A stretch of 64,000 nt of DNA from sequence record NC_007623.1. One strand, written 5' to 3'. The first letter of the stretch is position 1; each line of letters begins with the position of its first letter. Below the pieces are notes generated by a model. The model saw nothing but the letters and a program-made list of their open reading frames with translations, ran no database searches and had not been told where the DNA came from. This document shows, one piece after another, positions 29,500 to 54,277 of the stretch. The translations under genes and the position numbers were made by a program.

Positions 29500-30969
29500 A
29501 TGAGTACGCCTCTTCTGTTTACCCAAGAGTTGGAATCGTCGGATACGTTGATTGTAAATCTTCCGTTTTCCCCTATTTTCGATATGTTAAACACCGAGAT
29601 CTTGATGAGTGCATCAGGGGTGGCGTATAACAACGGGGGTCTTTGTCGTAACAATGCGATCGTCGGTGGGAACAACACCCAGAAGACCGGGATGACCGTA
29701 CTGGGTATGGCACGGGTCTTGATTCGGTTTAAAGGGTCTGTTGTCTTCTTCTTTGATATTGAGGCCACCTTCTCCGTAGACCGTCTGGCGGAAATGATAG
29801 ACCGAGAGATCGGTATTCACGGGTACTTCAACGAACAGATACTCGGCAAGCGCTTCTTCTACTTCTCTCGGAATGATTTGGTAAATCCCTGTGATGGCAC
29901 CTTTGTTCATGATAAGTTCAAATGGTTGAAGGGGAAGATCGCTGAACAGATTAAGGCCAAAGCCGATATCTTCATGAAGACCCCGTTTACGGACAGCAAA
30001 GGCAACCCCGTTAAAATCATTACCCCTATTCTGTGCGTGGTCGACTCTATCTCTGAAATGCCCTTCCATCGGGTATCGGAACATTTCCAAGAAGGGGATG
30101 TTGATCAAGGCGGAGAGAAGAAGACGCGCGATCTGGTGATTGGGAACCTCCGTCGTATCGTCTATGAAGACGCCGATATCTTGGGTGGGGTATCGGGTTG
30201 TTACCAGATTTGGGTTGCTCAGGTTGTTGATAAGATCAACATGACTGGGCGTCCTGAGGAGAAGGAATCTATTTTCATCCGTCCGGGTAAGAAGCTGAAA
30301 GGTCCTAAGGCCATGATGCGTATTCCGCAGATCGGTCACGAGATCCTTAAAGGTTCAGTGCTTAAAGGCGGAAGTAATGGTCAAGAGTGGTTGTACCCGA
30401 ATCCCTTTGGTAAAGATGTTATTGTGACTCCTGATGCCAAAGAAATGCCTGACTTGATGATTTATAATAATCAACCCTATCGGAATAAGGCGGGGATGTC
30501 AGGTATTAACGCGTTCTTCATTGGTTCCCAGTCCATGGGAATTCAAGAAGGTCTGACCATGTACCATGTACTGAAGACAGCTAAGTACTTCGGCCTGGAA
30601 GGGAGTGACCGCAGTCATCACTGCATTCTGTACCCTGATCTGAAGGTGGGACGTACCACTGTATGGGAAAATACCATTGAAGACCGTAAATTCCTGCGAG
30701 CACTGACCATCATTTACCACTTGTGGTTCATGCAAACCTTCTGGCTGACACTTCCCCACAAATACCGTCTGACTCCTCAGGCATTGTACGACGGTATTAT
30801 TGCTCAAGGACTGGACTGGAACGATATTCTGGAGAACACAGTAGACTACTGGTACACGAATCCAGATATTGACAAGTACACTGTTACAACGTATGAACTC
30901 ATTCGCATTGCACTGGGTGAACGTAAACCTTACTGGAAAGAGAAAGGTGCACCTAAGGCTATTATTTAA
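29500..30969 (+). CDS. uvsX: RecA/UvsX-like recombinase
   Basis: Walker A-like GGNNTQKT, FFDIEAT, Walker B VVDSISEM, WVAQV, RNKAG; phiKZ-type size. Confidence 0.8.
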   Translation: MSTPLLFTQELESSDTLIVNLPFSPIFDMLNTEILMSASGVAYNNGGLCRNNAIVGGNNTQKTGMTVLGMARVLIRFKGSVVFFFDIEATFSVDRLAEMIDREIGIHGYFNEQILGKRFFYFSRNDLVNPCDGTFVHDKFKWLKGKIAEQIKAKADIFMKTPFTDSKGNPVKIITPILCVVDSISEMPFHRVSEHFQEGDVDQGGEKKTRDLVIGNLRRIVYEDADILGGVSGCYQIWVAQVVDKINMTGRPEEKESIFIRPGKKLKGPKAMMRIPQIGHEILKGSVLKGGSNGQEWLYPNPFGKDVIVTPDAKEMPDLMIYNNQPYRNKAGMSGINAFFIGSQSMGIQEGLTMYHVLKTAKYFGLEGSDRSHHCILYPDLKVGRTTVWENTIEDRKFLRALTIIYHLWFMQTFWLTLPHKYRLTPQALYDGIIAQGLDWNDILENTVDYWYTNPDIDKYTVTTYELIRIALGERKPYWKEKGAPKAII

Positions 30970-46148: not shown

Positions 46149-47591
46149 ATGAAACCGACTAACATTACCCTCTTAGACCCCCGGACGATTGTTCCGGGTG
46201 TCTTTAAACCTATTACGTCTACAGACTCATTTGAAGGGATGACCCAGAACCTCAATGATGACGGTCTCTTCTCCCTTGACATCTTCGGTAAACTGGGTAG
46301 TAAACAACGTGATAACACGGAAGCGTATATCGACGTTAAACTTCCCATCTTCAATCCCACTTACCTAAAAGCCCTTATACAGATCAAAAGTCTGTATCAT
46401 TCAATTTTGAAAGGGTCGGAATACGCGGTATGGGATCCCGAACTGAAGGATTTCATAAAATCGAACATCCTGGAAGGGGAAAAGGGTTTCGCCTTCTTCC
46501 TGAAACACTTCGATGAAACCGTCTTCTCCCTGACCCCCTCTCATAAACGCAAACAACGGGTAGAACTGGCGAACCAATTCCGTAACACGGCGTTAACGGA
46601 TAAGGTCCTGGTCATCCCCGCGGGTCTCAGGGATATCCAATTCAATCCAGATGGTTCCCACACCGAACCTGAAATCACTGAATTCTACCGCGCCTTAATG
46701 TTCCGGGTGAGAGTGATCCTCGGGAATAAGGAAGATGCCCTGAACCCCCTTTACGATACCGTTCGGTGGGGGGTACAGAATGCTTTCTTGGAATTGGATA
46801 ATTACCTCTTTGGTTTACTCCAGGGGAAAGGGGGTGTTCTCCAGCGTCGTATGTCCACCCGAGGGGTTCACAACAGCACCCGGAACGTCATTACCGCCCG
46901 TAAAGTCTCCAGGACACGTTTAGACTTCGACGACGGTGTAGGTCCTAACTCTGCGGACATGGGACTCTACCAAGCCCTGCTGAACTTCCCTTATGTCTGC
47001 ATCAATGCGTTAACCAACGGCTACCTTTCCAACATCTTCACCCCCAGCTCTCAAACCGCTAAGCTGGTGAATACCAAGACCCTGGAATACGAATACGCTG
47101 AAGTCTCCCCTGAGGTGGTAGAGAAATGGACCACCGCCACCGGGTTAATGAAACTCTTCAACGGGTTTGCCGATCCCTCCTTACGGAGTAAACCCATTGT
47201 CATTGAGTGGAAATACTTAGCCCTCATTTATGATGATGGGACTGATGTGTGTGTTCTCCATGACATCAACGATCTCCCTCAAGGGAAAGACCGTAAATGG
47301 GTGAAACCTATCACCTACATGGAACTCTTCTACTTGAGTTGCCACAGTGTCATCGAAGAACAGATTACAGGACAAACCCGGTATCCCATTACGGGGATTG
47401 GCTCTATCTTCCCGGCTAAGGTTAACCTACGTACCACCACCAATGCGAGCCAGCGGGTCATTCGTAATCCGATTGATTGGAGTGTGCGGGAAACCTGTAA
47501 ACGGTTCCCTAAACGTGAAGCCCACCCCGATTACTTCGATGCCATGTCCGTAGACCCCTCTAGAGAAGCTTTGCTCGACAGTGACCATGAT
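46149..47591 (+). CDS. rpoC: virion RNA polymerase beta-prime N-terminal subunit, exon 1 (phiKZ gp180-like)
   Basis: DGLFSLDIFG, VLVIPAGLRD, LQGKGGVLQRR, RYP; ends in DSDHD, the first half of the catalytic motif. Confidence 0.93.
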
Positions 47592-47621
47592 TAGATAGTG
47601 ATGCATGATATAAACTCACTA

Positions 47622-47673
47622 TACAACTCCTATTGTATGCGGAAGTGTTCGCATTCGACCATAAGGAGTTGTA
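47622..47673 (+). promoter_or_regulatory. hairpin sequestering the HNH ribosome-binding site, with internal TATG
   Basis: TACAACTCCT (47622-31) is perfectly complementary to AGGAGTTGTA (47664-73), which includes the Shine-Dalgarno. Confidence 0.7.
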
Positions 47674-47676
47674 AAG

Positions 47677-48948
47677 ATGCTAACGTGTTTTGGAAAGAAA
47701 TACGTGTTGTCTACAACCAACACGGTTTACAATGTCACCGATAAGACAGATGTTCCAGTCCATCGGATGACAGACGGGAATACGTTCTTCATCGCACGGG
47801 GCGATGAAAACGAACTGGTTAAGATCAAACTGGGGTTAATGATCCTCCATGGAGAAGGAAAGTTCCATCTTCCTCTCTCTGAATGGGAACAGGTGAAAGT
47901 AGGTTTTCTGGATGACGATACAGGAAACTTTGCAGCGGATAACCTTTACTTGGTCTATCCTGAAGAGGGCATCCCTTACCCTGAACTCTCTGGGTACTAC
48001 TACATCCCTGGGTTTGAACTCAACGCAATCAACCGAGACGGTGTGGTATACCGAACAGTTAGAAAGAATCTTTACCCACCGTATCTGGGTGGTAACACCG
48101 TTCCTAACAGTTTCTACCCCTTTGTTCGACTGGATGTGGTCAGTGGGGATGAACGCAAGTATGTCCACCGGCTACTGGCGGAGACCTTCGGTAAGCCGCC
48201 TAAGGGCTACCCCAAGCTACTGGTCGACCATAATGACGGTAACAAGATGAACTTCAAGCTCTTTAACTTGATTTGGGTTACCGCTAAGGACAACTCCTTC
48301 AAAGCGTACAACAATCAAGAAGCGAGAGCGGACAATAATCCCTTGGAGGTTTTTGACAGGGAATTAGGTCAAGTCTTTAAGTACGTCAGTCAAAATGAGT
48401 TTGCGAGAACCATGGAGGTGGATTCTTGGTGCATTAGTCTGGTACTCAAACGTCCTCGTTCAGTGTACAAGAACAGGTACGTTCTTCGTCGGAAGGGAGA
48501 TACACGTGACTTCCAAGAGATCTGGGACTATAAGCCCCCTGTGGGTAAGAAGATCCTTGCCCGGAATGTCTTCACCGGTGAAATCACGGTGTATAATTCA
48601 TTGGCGGAGGCCTCTAGAGCAACACAGGTAGGGACAACAGGCATCCTGACGTCCCTGAGTAACACCAACCCGAGATCCGCCTTTAAAGACCTTCAATTCA
48701 AGCGGGAGTCTGACGAGACCCCTTGGCCTGATTTGAATGAATACGAACTGGAATGCATCCGGCGCAAGATGCACCCTGCTACAGCTGTGTATGAAATGTT
48801 TGATTCGGTAACCCAGGAGACGTCGATTGTGTATGGCGTTGATGCAGTTACCCGAATCACCGGAGCCAATCCCCGTACCGTTATCGTTTGCGCACGAGAA
48901 GGTAAGTTGCTCCATTCCCGTTATCGTTTCAAGAAACTTACACGTTAA
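47677..48948 (+). CDS. intron-encoded HNH homing endonuclease with NUMOD1/IENR1-like repeats
   Basis: VHRLLAETF...VDHNDGNKMNFKLFNLIWVTAKDN; three C-terminal repeats such as VYNSLAEASRATQV. Confidence 0.92.
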   Translation: MLTCFGKKYVLSTTNTVYNVTDKTDVPVHRMTDGNTFFIARGDENELVKIKLGLMILHGEGKFHLPLSEWEQVKVGFLDDDTGNFAADNLYLVYPEEGIPYPELSGYYYIPGFELNAINRDGVVYRTVRKNLYPPYLGGNTVPNSFYPFVRLDVVSGDERKYVHRLLAETFGKPPKGYPKLLVDHNDGNKMNFKLFNLIWVTAKDNSFKAYNNQEARADNNPLEVFDRELGQVFKYVSQNEFARTMEVDSWCISLVLKRPRSVYKNRYVLRRKGDTRDFQEIWDYKPPVGKKILARNVFTGEITVYNSLAEASRATQVGTTGILTSLSNTNPRSAFKDLQFKRESDETPWPDLNEYELECIRRKMHPATAVYEMFDSVTQETSIVYGVDAVTRITGANPRTVIVCAREGKLLHSRYRFKKLTR

Positions 48949-49363
48949 CGAGTTTATATCCATCACTTAGTCCGGCTAGGCACGAAAGTCCTAGACCGTA
49001 TTCCTCTGAATTGCTGGGAGTTCACAAAAGTCTGTTGGCTACAACGTAACTGGAAACAGTAAGCGTGAATGCGACCGAAAGGTAGAAAGAACAACAGACC
49101 TGACCTACGCTAACCAATAACGCTAAGGGTCGTAAACAAGGGACAATCAGCCGCTAAGACGCTACCGGGTATTAAACCCTATGCGTAAAGTTCAACGACT
49201 AAGGGAGTTATGACCCTGTACACCTACCAAGGAAGGGGGTGGAAGTGGAGGAGACCTAAGGGGGAATAGACCTATTCCCTACGGTCAAGATATAGTCTGG
49301 CCCTGTTTAATAAACAGGCAGGCACCTGAGTGTGCCGGGTCCTAGTACGGACTGACCACCGCG

Positions 49364-49546
49364 GGCGATCAATTGTCGAGCCATTCTGTTGTAGCGGAAG
49401 ACAGCAAACAACAGGCCTACGAACTCTTTGGGAAACGGGAGTATTACATCAGTGGTACGGGTCGGTTTTTGTACGATCCGATCAATGAACCGATTCTCTT
49501 TATGTTTAAAGCAGCGACGAGCGGCTTAGAGGATATTGAGGTATGA
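49364..49546 (+). CDS. rpoC: virion RNAP beta-prime N-terminal subunit, exon 2 (60 aa, absent from the ORF track)
   Basis: Reads GDQLSSHSVVAEDSKQQAYELFGKREYYISGTGRFLYDPINEPILFMFKAATSGLEDIEV*; completes DHDGD; stop overlaps the next ATG (ATGA). Confidence 0.9.
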   Translation, partial: GDQLSSHSVVAEDSKQQAYELFGKREYYISGTGRFLYDPINEPILFMFKAATSGLEDIEV

Positions 49547-52500
49547 GCAATCCAATTACGTATTCCGAGTTCTTTAAGCACTTTGTGCTGCGTAAGAAAC
49601 AAGACGTTGTAAACCCTAAAGTCCTGGGTATTGGTGAAGTGATCCTTCCTAAGGGGAGTTTACTGCACTTCGTACCGAAGACGATTAACGAAAAGGGACC
49701 GGGTAGTAGTGAAGCGTTTATCAGTAACTTCCCTAAAGAGGTCTTTATTGAGTTTGTAAGGGACGGGTATAAGCCGGTGATGGGGCATGGGCGGACAGTC
49801 GCCTATGACTACCCTAAGGCGGTTAAGGCGTACCGGGCGAGTCACTACATGTACAGCTGGGTGCGAGAGATCAGCACGGTGTACAACAAAGAGAACGTGT
49901 TGGTCGTTAAGAACTACGGGATGATTCCTCAGGGGTTCGTTTACCGTCCGAGTATTTTCGTGAATTATGAAAAATACTACAACATGATGCACCTGCTCAT
50001 TGAGAACATCAATGCAGAAGCCGAGAAAGGGGTGCGTCGGCAGTATATGCGGATTGACCTGCCGTTGAACCTGCCGTCCCTGGTTGAGCTTGAGAAAGAC
50101 TACGGACGGTTTATTGATGGGTTTAATGATGGGCATCCTGTCCTGATGCGCAATATGTTGGAGAGTACGAAGGCTGAGAACTGCTATTGGCTGTTGGACC
50201 TACTGGGGTTCCTGTTTGGCCAGTATTCGTTCAGTTTGTTCGGTAAACTCACCGACCAGGCGTATAAGGATTTGCATATCCTCTTTACGTCACAAAGTAA
50301 AGTCATTGTAGTACAACTGGGGCTGTTGAAGGGTTGGTTAGATGAAACAAATCCTAAAGACGAGAAAACCTACCCCTCTGCTCGGAAAGAGTTTGAAAGT
50401 CTGAAGACATTGACCCGCCATAATGCGGTTAAACGTTTCTATTTGGCTTTGATGAATCTTTCTCGTGGAGGCGTTCCTGAGAATGTACTCATTAAAGAGG
50501 AAACGAAAAATGTCATCCCAATTGCCGGAGAGAAAGGTACCGTTGACCAAGTGGCTGCGGGAACGTCACGAGAAGAAGAAGAAGAAACATCCAATCTTCC
50601 AGAAACCCGAGACCATACTGGCTCGGGCACGGTTCCCCGTGCTGATCGTCCTGCTGGTTCTATCCTTGATGTTTTCAGCCGAAGTGAAGGACCTGGCGAG
50701 GCACATGACGAAGAGCAAGACACAGCGGGAGAACGAGGTGCTGATTCAAATCTTGAAGAGTGGACATCGCCGGTAGATGATGAACTGCTGGAGGTGGAGA
50801 AAGTCCAAACCGAGATCAATACCAACAAGAATGTGTTTAAGACGCCTGAGAGTGGTGTAAAGCGGGCGTTGGAGGAGCGGGCTAAGGAAGGTACGCTGAC
50901 GGTGGCTGAACATGATTTCTTCATGCGTAAAGCGACCCGTTATCAGCACATTGAGATGGAGAACGGTCAAACGTTCGAAGAGTTCATTCAGATCAAACCC
51001 GAAGAGGTTAAAGACCTGGGTGGAGAGATTGAAGGTGAGTTTCTCCCCGTACTGGATGAGAGCATGTTGCGGAGTCGTGCCAAATCCCTCAAGATCGAAT
51101 ATCCTCAGAAGTTTTTACACCGGGATATTGGTCGAATGGTGTTGGGTCTTCAGAACGCTGGCTTTGCGATGAACGACTACCGGCGTGAGAAGGTCGTCAG
51201 CGTAGAAGGCAGTTACGAGGTCCACAGCATTCAGTTACACGAAGTCAATGGTGATCAGGTCACTGTACATACTCGGTTGCCTACGGTGCTGAAAGACGGC
51301 ACCTACGTCATTGATGGTGTTAAGCAACACATGCAACTGCAACGTCGGGAGAAACCTTTCCGGAAGATCAGTCCTCGGGAAGTGGTGCTGTCGAGCTATT
51401 ACGACCGTAAGCTCATGGTGAGTCGTAGTCCGAAGATGGTGGATAACCTCTCTACGTTCATGGTGAAGCAAATCTCCCTCCAGAGTAAGCGGAAAGGGTA
51501 TACGGTCACTAAAGGCAGTACGTGGGATCGCTCCCTTAAAGCCCCCCGGATTTACAGCATTCTGGCTCGTCAGTACAAGTACATTACTGTCGACGGGTTG
51601 GTATTGGACTTCCGGTTGAAGGATCTCCTGGAACTCCACCCTGAGTTCAAAGCCTATACCCGCCCTGATCGGTTCTTGATTGGGGTAAAAGACGGATTAC
51701 CTTTGATCATTGATGATTACGGTAACCTGTACAAAGGGGAAGAGGAACTCGGTACTGTTGAAGACTTGCTCGGTATTGATGTTCGTAAAGCGCCTTTGGA
51801 ACACGTGGTGATTAACATCAGCGGGTATTCGTTTCCGTTGGGAGTGGTCCTGTGCTTCTACTTCGGTATTGATGAACTGTTGCGGGTGATTAAAGCCACG
51901 ACGCGTTCGGTACCCGTAGGGACTCGCCCTAAATTGACGGAGGATGAATACGCGATTCAGTTCAATGACGAATACTTGATCTTTAACCGTCGGGAGAAGC
52001 TCACCACGTTGATCTTCGGTGGAATGCCGAAGTTGAACAACATCAGTAACTTCAGTCGGAGTGATTTGAATAATAACAGTATTTGGAGTGCGTTAATGGG
52101 AGACCCTCGGGTTCGCCCATCTCAGTTCCAGGAAATGAAGAACCTCTTCGATCTCTTTATCGATCCCATTACGAAAGACCTCTTGAAAGAGATGAAGCTG
52201 TCTGAAGACTTCCATTACTTGCTGATTGATGCGGCTAAGGCATTGGAAACGGATTACAGTCGACACGAGGTGGAGATTGAAGAGCAACGCATTGTAGGGT
52301 ATGAACGCTTCGCGGGTCATCTCTACACGGAATTTGTAAAGTCCATTCGTCAATACCGGAATAAGGGGAAAGGACGTAAACACAAACTGGACTTTAATCC
52401 GGACGCGGTTATTATTGCCATTGGTACTGACCGGTCTACGAACTTGGTGGAGGAAGTGAATCCAGTTCACCAAGTGAAGGACCAAGAGGAAGTGACGTTT

Positions 52501-52743
52501 GGGGGTACGGGTGGTCGTAGTGAAATCACCATGGTCAAACGCGCACGGACTCAGCTGGAGAGTTACAAAGGGGTCATCAGTGAAGCCAACAAGGACAGTG
52601 GTAAAGTGGGGTATGTGACCTACACCACCTCTGATCCGGGTATCGCTGATTTCCGAGGCAATGTTGATCCCAAGAACAAACGTACTCCTACCGGTGACGG
52701 TTCGGTAACTATGAACCTGATGTACGGTGGAACGCATGACGAT
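49543..52743 (+). CDS. rpoB: virion RNA polymerase beta N-terminal subunit, exon 1 (phiKZ gp178-like)
   Basis: VIDGVKQHMQLQ, EVNPVHQV...VTFGGTGGR, SEANKDSGKVG; ends in GTHDD. Confidence 0.92.
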
Positions 52744-53158
52744 TGAGCTGTTGTGAAAACAATAGATCACTCAGTCCAACCAGGGAGTAATCCCTTGTTG
52801 CCATTACCTTTAATTGCGGGAACCTACTGAGAGCCTTATCTACCAAACCCGAGCAGGAAACCAACGGGTGGCCAACCATAACGGGTTGGGGACGGTAATA
52901 ACGATAAGGATTGGGGAACCCTACGCAGCGAAGCACCTACGTATTGTCGAGAGGACAAGATAGGGTGAACGTTCAACGACTACGGATGAAATTTCCGGTA
53001 GAGGTGTCAGGATGATACTTCCAAAAGTAAGGTTGCCCTGTATGCTTGAGGTGTGAATAACACTGAGTACAGGGATGAAATATAGTCTCGTCATCTAAGG
53101 GAAAACCTTAGAGCGTGGTGCTACGCGCACCGGCGGATAGGATATCCGTGAAGAAACG
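52744..53158 (+). mobile_element. ORF-less group I intron (415 nt)
   Basis: P1 ACGAU/GUUGU; P AATTGCGGGAA 52812, R GTTCAACGACTAC 52971, S GAAATATAGTCT 53077; terminal G 53158. Confidence 0.93.
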
Positions 53159-54277
53159 GTCAAACGAGCAGTATTCACATCGACTCAGGCCTCTCAAGCA
53201 GTGATGGCTAAGAACTACGAGATCGTTACCCTGAGAACGGGTTACGAGAATGTACTGGCTCACCGGACCTCTGACCTCTACAGCAAAGTAGCCGCTGAAG
53301 ATGGTAAGGTCACTAAAGTGGAGAACGATCGCTTACTCGTCGAATACAAGGACGGAACAACGGACTCGTATCCCTTGGGGTTGGTGATTGGGGAAGCCAG
53401 TGGGGAATATCATCCCCACAGCCGTACCACAGATCTGAAGGTCGGAGATACCTTCCGTAAGGGAGATGTCATCGGTTGGGATGAAAACTGGTTCGGTCGA
53501 GATCCCTTCTGCCCAGGGCAAGTCGGGGTTAAGATGGGTAAAATGTGCCAGATCGTTATGGTGGAAGATCAGGATGTGTACGAGGACTCTATTGCAATTT
53601 CGAAAGAATTGGCGATGGAAGCACGTACCCCATTCATTAAACCCAGTCGGTTTGCCGAGGACGTGTCAAACAACCTGGTAATGCGGGTTAAGGTAGGAGA
53701 TTACGTCGAACAGGACACGATTTTATGTGATATCGAAGAGCCTCACTTGGTGGAGGGCGAGGAGCTTCCTGAGCTCGAAGCAGACATCAACAAACTCGGT
53801 ATCAAACAGATCCGTTCGAAGCATCATGGAAAGATCGTACACATCGATGTTCGGTACAACTCTCCCTTAGACAAGATGTCTGACTCGTTCCGTTCGTTCA
53901 TTGTTCAGAAGGATAAGGAAACGAAACGGAAAGGGTTGGTGGAAGGAACCGGTGTCGAGAACAATGCCATTTCCACGATGTTCAATCTTAATCGTCCCAT
54001 GTTAGGTCCAGGTAAGGCGTTCATTACGTTCTACATCGAGTCGTTAGACCCGAGTACCAATGCGGATAAGTATGTCATTGGGAACCAGATGAAAGCCACT
54101 GTGGGTCGTATCATGGAAAGACCGCTTAAGACCGCCAGTGGGATTGTCATTGATGTGAAGTCGAGCTTTAAAGGGATGTTTAACCGAATGGTGCTCAGTT
54201 TGAGGAACAAGCTGGTTGCTAACGAGTATGGTTACCAAATCACTCGCCAGGCCATTAAACTCTACAGAGGTAAATAA
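53159..54277 (+). CDS. rpoB: virion RNA polymerase beta N-terminal subunit, exon 2 (372 aa)
   Basis: Starts VKRAVFTSTQASQAV, in frame with track ORF 53201; EDSIAIS, VKVGDYV, DKYVIGNQMKATVG correspond to bacterial beta motifs. Confidence 0.92.
   Translation, partial: VKRAVFTSTQASQAVMAKNYEIVTLRTGYENVLAHRTSDLYSKVAAEDGKVTKVENDRLLVEYKDGTTDSYPLGLVIGEASGEYHPHSRTTDLKVGDTFRKGDVIGWDENWFGRDPFCPGQVGVKMGKMCQIVMVEDQDVYEDSIAISKELAMEARTPFIKPSRFAEDVSNNLVMRVKVGDYVEQDTILCDIEEPHLVEGEELPELEADINKLGIKQIRSKHHGKIVHIDVRYNSPLDKMSDSFRSFIVQKDKETKRKGLVEGTGVENNAISTMFNLNRPMLGPGKAFITFYIESLDPSTNADKYVIGNQMKATVGRIMERPLKTASGIVIDVKSSFKGMFNRMVLSLRNKLVANEYGYQITRQAIKLYRGK

Follow-up and report, generated by a model that had tools for sequence, protein, structure and literature searches.

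The DNA considered here lies in a window of 64,000 nucleotides (nt) from record NC_007623.1, whose positions equal those of the record minus 147215. Segment 46149-49546 matches Pseudomonas phage EL (AJ697969 / NC_007623) at 100% identity, and it recurs in its entirety in 8 further EL-like phage records (9 in total), at 97.5-99.0% identity. RefSeq places there gp184, labelled RNA polymerase beta subunit, the HNH endonuclease gene gp185, and the start of gp186, with gp187 further downstream. Nothing is annotated between 48949 and 49542, and a 60-codon frame that we describe below as a second exon has no coding sequence (CDS) in either the RefSeq or the GenBank record of EL. We present evidence that 47592-49363 is, very probably, a mobile self-splicing group I intron (intron 1), inserted between the second Asp and the Gly of the D-x-D-G-D motif of a beta'-like polymerase gene.

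The open reading frame (ORF) 46149-47594 ends in LLDSDHD: the codons GAC CAT GAT, with the last T at 47591, are followed by TAG at 47592-47594. After G49363, the sequence GGC GAT CAA TTG TCG AGC CAT (G-D-Q-L-S-S-H) opens a frame of 60 codons, which runs to the TGA at 49544-49546 and overlaps by this stop the gp186 ATG at 49543. The intervening segment, which follows U47591 and closes with the terminal G49363, measures 49363-47592+1 = 1772 nt. A preliminary description of this DNA had proposed an exon 1 ending in D-H-D at 47591, an intron opening with TAG and closing on G49363, a loss of 1772 nt, and a 60-codon GGC GAT frame with a stop overlapping the beta ATG. All these elements are present in the sequence, and every coordinate that it gave holds. 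The D-x-D-G-D motif is the counterpart of the NADFDGD metal-binding loop in bacterial beta', and in EL it is formed only after joining DHD (47583-47591) to GD (49364-49369).

The exact junction was examined by comparison with intron-less relatives, the two exons being always searched as separate queries. By tblastn, exon 1 was found in 310 phage records and exon 2 in 68, and in Kosakonia Kc263, Erwinia AH04, Aeromonas AerS_266 and Vibrio Aphrodite1 the two separate matches abut to the nucleotide. In Kc263, gp216 is a single uninterrupted protein of 539 residues, whose junction reads GGDFDGDALSANS, in context GGDFDGDALSANSIMAEDS and GLAGGDFDGDALSANSIMAEDS. The closest full-length homologues, of metagenomic origin (75-76% identical, 538-540 residues), read LDSDHDGDQLNSNS at this place, and the predicted EL product reads LDSDHD/GDQLSSHS (here and below, a slash marks an insertion or splice point). 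DxDGD is found in 101 of the 120 best exon 1 homologues, 74 of these having DHDGD. The PHROG 2986 profile (539 positions) is likewise divided between the exons, positions 5-486 being covered by exon 1 (E-value 9e-193) and 487-538 by exon 2 (E-value 1.9e-8). By tblastn, the exon 2 protein is 100% conserved in all 9 EL-like records. Both the intron-less homologues and the split of the profile support the restoration of D-H-D-G-D that had been claimed, and CATGAT/GGCGAT is the only junction with an in-frame product matching the intron-less relatives. The predicted spliced junction has the nucleotide sequence GACCATGATGGCGATCAA and would yield the tryptic peptide EALLDSDHDGDQLSSHSVVAEDSK. Two other boundaries were considered and rejected. 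A 3' end at G49317, the limit of the Rfam model, would bring in an in-frame TGA three codons later. With a 5' splice site after CAU (GAUCAU paired with GUGAUC, with a U-G wobble in contigs L012 and L011), no 3' site restores the second Asp. In the literature searched, which lay outside the EL genome paper (Hertveldt 2005), a description of the EL junction was not found.

We next consider the ribozyme core. When the 64-kb window was searched with 4227 Rfam families, RF00028 was the only family above its gathering score (51.1 bits for a gathering score of 50, E-value 4.6e-10), at 48945-49317. The model ends at G49317, which is the end of P9, and the true 3' end lies 46 nt beyond, past the hairpins P9.1 and P9.2. 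The P, Q, R and S elements had been placed at 49009-49298, and indeed AATTGCTGGGA begins at 49009 and AAGATATAGTCT finishes at 49298; the P3 pairing announced as TTCCTCT with GGAGGAG was recovered at 49001-49007 and 49247-49253.

Truncated homologues of the gene led to three metagenomic contigs (L007, L009 and L011) with an intron at the exact EL site. All 4 same-site introns start after U and end in CG ahead of GGN GAY. Vibrio phage VP4B has an intron two codons downstream of the EL site, with 64 nt of its core at 91% identity with EL; a scan of the viral_contigs set with the P2 pattern found again only EL and VP4B. These five introns (EL, L007, L009, L011 and VP4B) were aligned after cutting out the ORFs. 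Their consensus structure comprises 96 pairs, with 92.8% of the cells paired; sliding the partners by 1-3 columns lowers this share to 35-47%. In 37 pairs both sides have changed, compared to 14.4 +/- 2.7 in column shuffles, and none of 500 shuffles reached 37. Two extra hairpins, P7.1 and P7.2, separate P7 from the 3' strand of P3 and suggest, short of a formal classification, that intron 1 belongs to subgroup IA, the usual phage type.

Table 1. Features of the EL polymerase locus and of related insertions. Positions are those of the window unless another record is named; helix positions are given as 5' strand, then 3' strand.
Feature	Position	Strand	Basis or remark
gp184, RefSeq 'RNA polymerase beta subunit'	46149-47594	+	RefSeq annotation
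gp185, RefSeq 'HNH endonuclease'	47677-48948	+	RefSeq annotation
gp186	49543-52746	+	RefSeq annotation
gp187	53201-54277	+	RefSeq annotation
Exon 1, beta'-like N-terminal subunit (annotated gp184), 481 codons, end D-S-D-H-D	46149-47591	+	ORF list, PHROG 2986
Group I intron 1 (very probable), 1772 nt	47592-49363	+	RF00028; intron-less homologues set the ends
P1 5' strand GAU/UA, splice after U47591	47589-47593	+	Pairing common to six introns
P1 extension, 5' strand AGUGAUG	47597-47603	+	7/7 bases pair with CAUCACU
Hairpin burying the gp185 ribosome-binding site AAGGAG	47622-47673	+	Minimum-free-energy fold
Intron-encoded HNH homing endonuclease gp185, 423 residues	47677-48948	+	Pfam, PHROG, 1u3e
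HNH domain of gp185, residues 161-207	~48157-48297	+	Pfam HNH_3
P1 extension, 3' strand CAUCACU	48961-48967	+	Pairs with AGUGAUG
P1 3' strand, internal guide sequence UAGUC, directly 5' of P2	48968-48972	+	AGUCCGG invariant in 5/5 aligned introns
Ribozyme core and periphery	48974-49353	+	Helix coordinates, covariation
P2	48974-83, 48988-97	+	Fold
P3	49002-07, 49247-52	+	Fold
P4-P5	49012-23, 49141-52	+	Fold
P5 extensions	49030-49132	+	Fold
P7	49197-201, 49293-97	+	GACUA with UAGUC, invariant
P7.1	49202-05, 49214-17	+	Fold
P7.2	49221-28, 49234-41	+	4/8 pairs changed on both sides
P8	49253-56, 49283-86 and 49261-64, 49277-80	+	Fold
P9	49301-08, 49312-18	+	Fold
P9.1 (hairpin 49321-49336)	49321-25, 49332-36	+	Fold
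P9.2 (hairpin 49338-49353)	49338-42, 49349-53	+	Fold
Last G of intron 1, at the 3' splice junction CG/GG	49363	+	Only G giving in-frame exon 2
Exon 2, beta'-like subunit, 60 codons (GDQLSSHSVVAEDSK...) and stop	49364-49546	+	PHROG 2986, tblastn
Exon 1, presumed virion polymerase beta-like subunit (gp186), end G-G-T-H-D-D	49543-52743	+	Aligns with Kc263 beta residues 889-1088
Group I intron 2, 415 nt, ORF-less	52744-53158	+	RF00028, GXNNE2 empty site
Exon 2, beta-like subunit, start V-K-R-A-V-F	53159-54277	+	Kc263 beta, GXNNE2, tblastn
Same-site intron, 423-residue HNH gene	L007 2073-3810		RF00028, 63.9 bits
Same-site intron, 457 nt, ORF-less	L009 5944-6400		RF00028, 68.3 bits
Same-site intron, 421-residue HNH gene	L011 5823-7590		RF00028, 63.8 bits
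Vibrio phage VP4B intron, 497 nt, ORF-less	L003 3944-4440		RF00028, 51.2 bits
Motif cut after first D	phiKZ (L015 2718-4160); P0074, P0076, P0078, P0101
Motif cut after DxD	EL; P0002, P0003, P0014, P0019, P0051, P0092
Motif cut after DxDG	Aeromonas ZPAH34 (255-nt insert, L004 3947-4201); P0061, P0075, P0077, P0080, P0097, P0118
Motif cut after DxDGD	VP4B; P0010

At the 5' splice site, the EL pairs of P1 are G47589-C48972, A47590-U48971, the wobble U47591-G48970, U47592-A48969 and A47593-U48968. The same pairing of GAU with GUC, with the last exon U in a U-G wobble, is found in six introns (the 4 same-site introns, VP4B, and a second EL intron described below), with one to four extra pairs on the intron side. 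The helix is prolonged by the P1 extension, which has a wholly different sequence in each intron (7 bp in EL, 13 bp in L007, 17 bp in L009, 11 bp in L011), and the endonuclease gene, if present, sits in its loop. Two local hairpins were tried as P1, one pairing CAUGAU with GUGAUG around a G-G mismatch, the other being the minimum-free-energy hairpin 47586-47607, with a U47591-A47601 pair. Both were rejected since neither is conserved in L007 and L009, whereas the GAU with GUC pairing is conserved in six introns. Separately, we observed that the last six exon bases, CATGAT (47586-47591), recur 13 nt into the intron, at 47604-47609; this repeat makes the alternative hairpin 47586-47607 possible, which would hide the 5' splice site. 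RNAalifold also reported, in 4 of the 5 aligned introns, a pairing of the guide GUCC (48970-48973) with GGGC (49363-49366), that is, the terminal G and three exon 2 bases. If formed, this pairing would compete with P1, and it is not a canonical P10.

The ORF within the intron, gp185, has a Pfam HNH_3 domain (E-value 4.7e-11), and its whole length is covered by a match to PHROG 59 (E-value 6.7e-50). It also matches the I-HmuI structure 1u3e (E-value 1.3e-3) across the catalytic motif, VDHNDGNKMN...NLIWVTAKDN being aligned with VDHKDGNKDN...NLRWVTQKIN of I-HmuI (His ... Asn ... Asn motif); identity with phiKZ gp179 is 26%. In the minimum-free-energy fold of 47578-47682 (z-score -2.5), the ribosome-binding site of gp185 is buried in a stem of 9-10 bp pairing 47622-47631 with 47664-47673, the 9-bp stem consisting of ACAACUCCU (47623-47631) and AGGAGUUGU (47664-47672). 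Stems of different sequence, read directly from the sequence, overlap the GGAG in L007 and L011. Translation of I-TevI is held back by RNA structure over its ribosome-binding site. The EL hairpin resembles this arrangement, which suggests that it may serve as a translational restraint of the endonuclease.

Despite the RefSeq label 'beta', the gp184 product is beta'-like. This link runs via Kc263, whose intact homologue (49.5% identical) gives a match to AR9 phage polymerase beta' (chain 7s00_d, E-value 4e-7); a second stretch of the same comparison, weak and non-significant alone, aligns GDFDGD with GDYDGD. EL exon 1 alone gave no match as a PDB query, and Pfam searches with both beta'-like exons and gp186 matched no family. 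Jumbo-phage beta' subunits are split just past the domain bearing the metal-binding loop (PMC7598289), which accounts for the mere 55-58 residues found beyond the motif. The label 'virion' polymerase rests on homology to phiKZ gp180 and gp178, which are annotated as structural head proteins, gp178 being also described as a virion polymerase subunit (PMC11620839); the EL enzyme is thus presumably of the virion type. The preliminary description held that without splicing it is catalytically dead, and this would be expected from established knowledge of the motif.

Constraint on these genes was estimated against the sister phage GXNNE2. Synonymous to non-synonymous differences are 29:3 in exon 1 and 3:0 in exon 2 of the beta'-like gene, and with these two listed first, 29:3, 3:0, 51:2 and 28:2 over all polymerase exons. 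Such ratios indicate that both beta' exons are under strong purifying selection. For gp185, intact in 9 of 9 EL-like records, the counts are 18 synonymous and 20 non-synonymous, and the constraint is therefore much weaker than on the host gene. One irregularity was noted in phage HHBS8_1 (L002 6001-7444), whose record divides exon 1 between two overlapping CDSs and where tblastn covers it only in three pieces; the gene is otherwise 98% identical, and the irregularity reflects either a frameshift or sequencing errors.

Splicing of the EL intron itself is something that we infer from these comparisons, and it would proceed as follows. The precursor messenger RNA would fold so that GAU/UA pairs with UAGUC just upstream of P2, leaving U47591 in the U-G wobble. 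A free guanosine bound in P7 would attack after U47591, and the released 3' OH of U47591 would in turn attack after the terminal G49363. The exons would then be joined, GAC CAT GAT to GGC GAT CAA, giving a 541-residue subunit that reads LDSDHDGDQLSSHS. An unspliced message would stop at TAG 47592 and encode a 481-residue protein devoid of the third Asp and of the last 60 residues. As to mobility, the I-HmuI-like gp185 most likely nicks intron-less alleles of its host gene in co-infecting relatives, and would in this way promote homing.

Several observations weigh against this reading. The EL core is barely above the Rfam gathering score (51.1 for 50), and the local splice-site hairpin 47586-47607 competes with P1. 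The weakest points of the model are the exon side of P1, with just three pairs, and the failure to find a canonical P10, U48968 and A48969 being unable to pair with G49364 or G49365. Many group I introns can dispense with P10, so that its lack does not decide group I membership. Finally, gp185 evolves near neutrality between EL and GXNNE2 and may be losing its function. An alternative is that the element is group I by descent but has ceased to splice itself efficiently; it may need a protein helper, or may leave the gene largely non-functional. The EL score, the lowest among the members examined (51.1 versus 64-92 bits), the short P1 and the relaxed constraint on the endonuclease gene all go in this direction. 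However, the intron is kept in 9 of 9 EL-like records (97.5-100% identity), together with a 100% identical exon 2 protein, both exons are under strong purifying selection, the 12 differences that separate EL from GXNNE2 in the core are, as read by position, mostly located in loops or compatible with a wobble pair, and EL-like phages are propagated and viable. We consider such decay improbable.

Still less probable is a truly split gene, in which gp184 (481 residues) and a separate 60-residue peptide would be made without any splicing, with gp185 as a free-standing gene between them. Jumbo-phage polymerase genes do naturally come in several pieces (PMC7598289), and the records annotate the end of gp184 at 47594. 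But the break would separate two neighbouring residues of the metal-binding loop, and no ATG occurs in the 60-codon frame, which could start at the earliest from the TTG at 49373, past the G-D codons. Moreover, a complete, covarying group I core lies exactly between the two pieces, and the insert starts after U and ends in G in 4 of 4 same-site introns. Another type of element (intein or group II intron) or a different junction can practically be dismissed: the abstract of the EL genome paper reportedly also mentions intein-type elements in EL, but an intein is excluded here because the insert opens with an in-frame TAG, only RF00028 matches, and with alternative junctions the PHROG profile and the intron-less homologues are no longer matched, the one at G49317 meeting its in-frame TGA after three codons.

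A mobile group I intron in the metal-binding loop is thus the reading that we retain, and it has close parallels. The phiKZ locus, read directly, shows gp180 ending in LGAD and a stop, a 92.2-bit RF00028 match after gp179, which lies between gp180 and gp178, and a next frame starting FDGDTVSFNAV. These three elements place an intron of phiKZ within this motif too, following its first Asp. Gene, motif and layout (exon 1, HNH gene, core, short last exon by the beta gene) are those of EL. The insertion point differs, D/FDGD being two codons upstream of the EL site DHD/GD, and the P2 hairpin CGGCUAGG...CCUAGACCG, found in the EL lineage, is missing from the phiKZ core when this is inspected by eye. 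In the literature, gp179 has been called intron-encoded, and gp180 has been named among intron-bearing phiKZ genes (PMC11512511, PMC12676376); splicing was not detected in phiKZ by long-read complementary DNA sequencing (ONT-cappable-seq) under the conditions used (PMC10914365).

The second parallel is the experimentally characterised intron endonuclease gp210 of PhiPA3, which is located in the virion polymerase beta gene and nicks the intron-less allele of a co-infecting phage (Birkholz et al. 2024, Science; PMC11620839). Here also, a jumbo-phage gene for virion polymerase is interrupted by a group I intron within a conserved segment of the active site, but intron 1 of EL is in the beta'-like and not the beta gene. 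More distantly, EL resembles SPO1/SP82 (I-HmuI/I-HmuII) and T4 td/I-TevI, as phage group I introns in essential genes with nicking HNH enzymes; it differs by the host gene and by the placement of its ORF in the P1 extension. On the subject of jumbo-phage introns, a review of 2026 refers to the EL genome paper (PMC13282480). Given this citation and the literature on phiKZ gp179/gp180 and PhiPA3 gp210, we rate the kind of element as already known. What is new here is the exact junction, the unannotated exon 2, an intron 2 absent in GXNNE2, and at least 4 insertion positions in the motif. The mechanism would be standard group I self-splicing with HNH homing, and the main value of the analysis lies in annotation correction and in the comparative picture, EL adding a second, well-defined case of a mobile intron inside the beta' metal-binding loop.

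Annotated gp186 and gp187 are one gene, encoding the beta-like subunit and interrupted by an intron 2. Its RF00028 match (40.5 bits, E-value 6.8e-7 for the whole window) is under the gathering score of 50, and its P1 is 7 bp long, GAU/UGAG (52741-52747) pairing with CUCAGUC (52770-52776), with the U-G wobble at the splice site. GXNNE2 (97.5% identical) lacks exactly 52744-53158 and has beta as one CDS of 1439 residues; this natural empty site fixes both boundaries of intron 2. Kc263 beta is unbroken there (TKDD/TKRTLF), and tblastn aligns from residue 1-2 of beta exon 2 in 305 records. The annotated GTG start of gp187 (53201) lies 42 nt inside this exon. Intron 2 occupies the site of the PhiPA3 gp210 intron, directly after H-D-D, and differs from it in having no endonuclease gene. 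Just past the site, EL (GTC AAA) and GXNNE2 (GTG AAG, L017 ~11795) show synonymous differences in the first two codons, which could reflect a co-conversion tract or a change of endonuclease target.

These results have practical consequences. The public records of EL and its relatives mis-describe two essential polymerase genes, gp184 lacking its last 60 codons and its third catalytic Asp, and work on jumbo-phage polymerases that draws on these records, be it proteomics, phylogeny or structure prediction, would deal with truncated proteins. The beta' loop intron, together with the presence or absence of intron 2 among EL-like phages, could offer a simple laboratory system for intron spread or phage-phage competition, as for PhiPA3.

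The five residues of DxDGD are interrupted at 4 or more codon boundaries across jumbo phages and metagenomic contigs (last rows of Table 1). The group I core was checked for some of these inserts. The 255-nt insert of Aeromonas ZPAH34 gave no Rfam match at E < 0.1, so that it cannot be called group I. The pairing of GAU with GUC is used by EL intron 1 after the second Asp, by VP4B after the third Asp, and by EL intron 2 after the beta H-D-D. We tentatively propose, as a rather doubtful possibility, that one lineage with a three-base GUC guide may settle after any GAU Asp codon and might therefore have colonised several active-site positions. Introns inserted close to one another would each abolish the site that the other's endonuclease recognises. 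If so, they would serve as mutual immunity and as weapons in co-infection, as shown for PhiPA3 gp210.

A last, close relative of the EL core was seen in Klebsiella phage phiKp_32 (L005 3461-3812, record positions 30118-30469), in a different gene, at 51.3 bits and 86% identity over 63 nt. It lies downstream of an unannotated ORF (L005 2102-3475) that is, by eye, a probable homing endonuclease, and the exon that follows, also unannotated, looks like part of another polymerase beta subunit.

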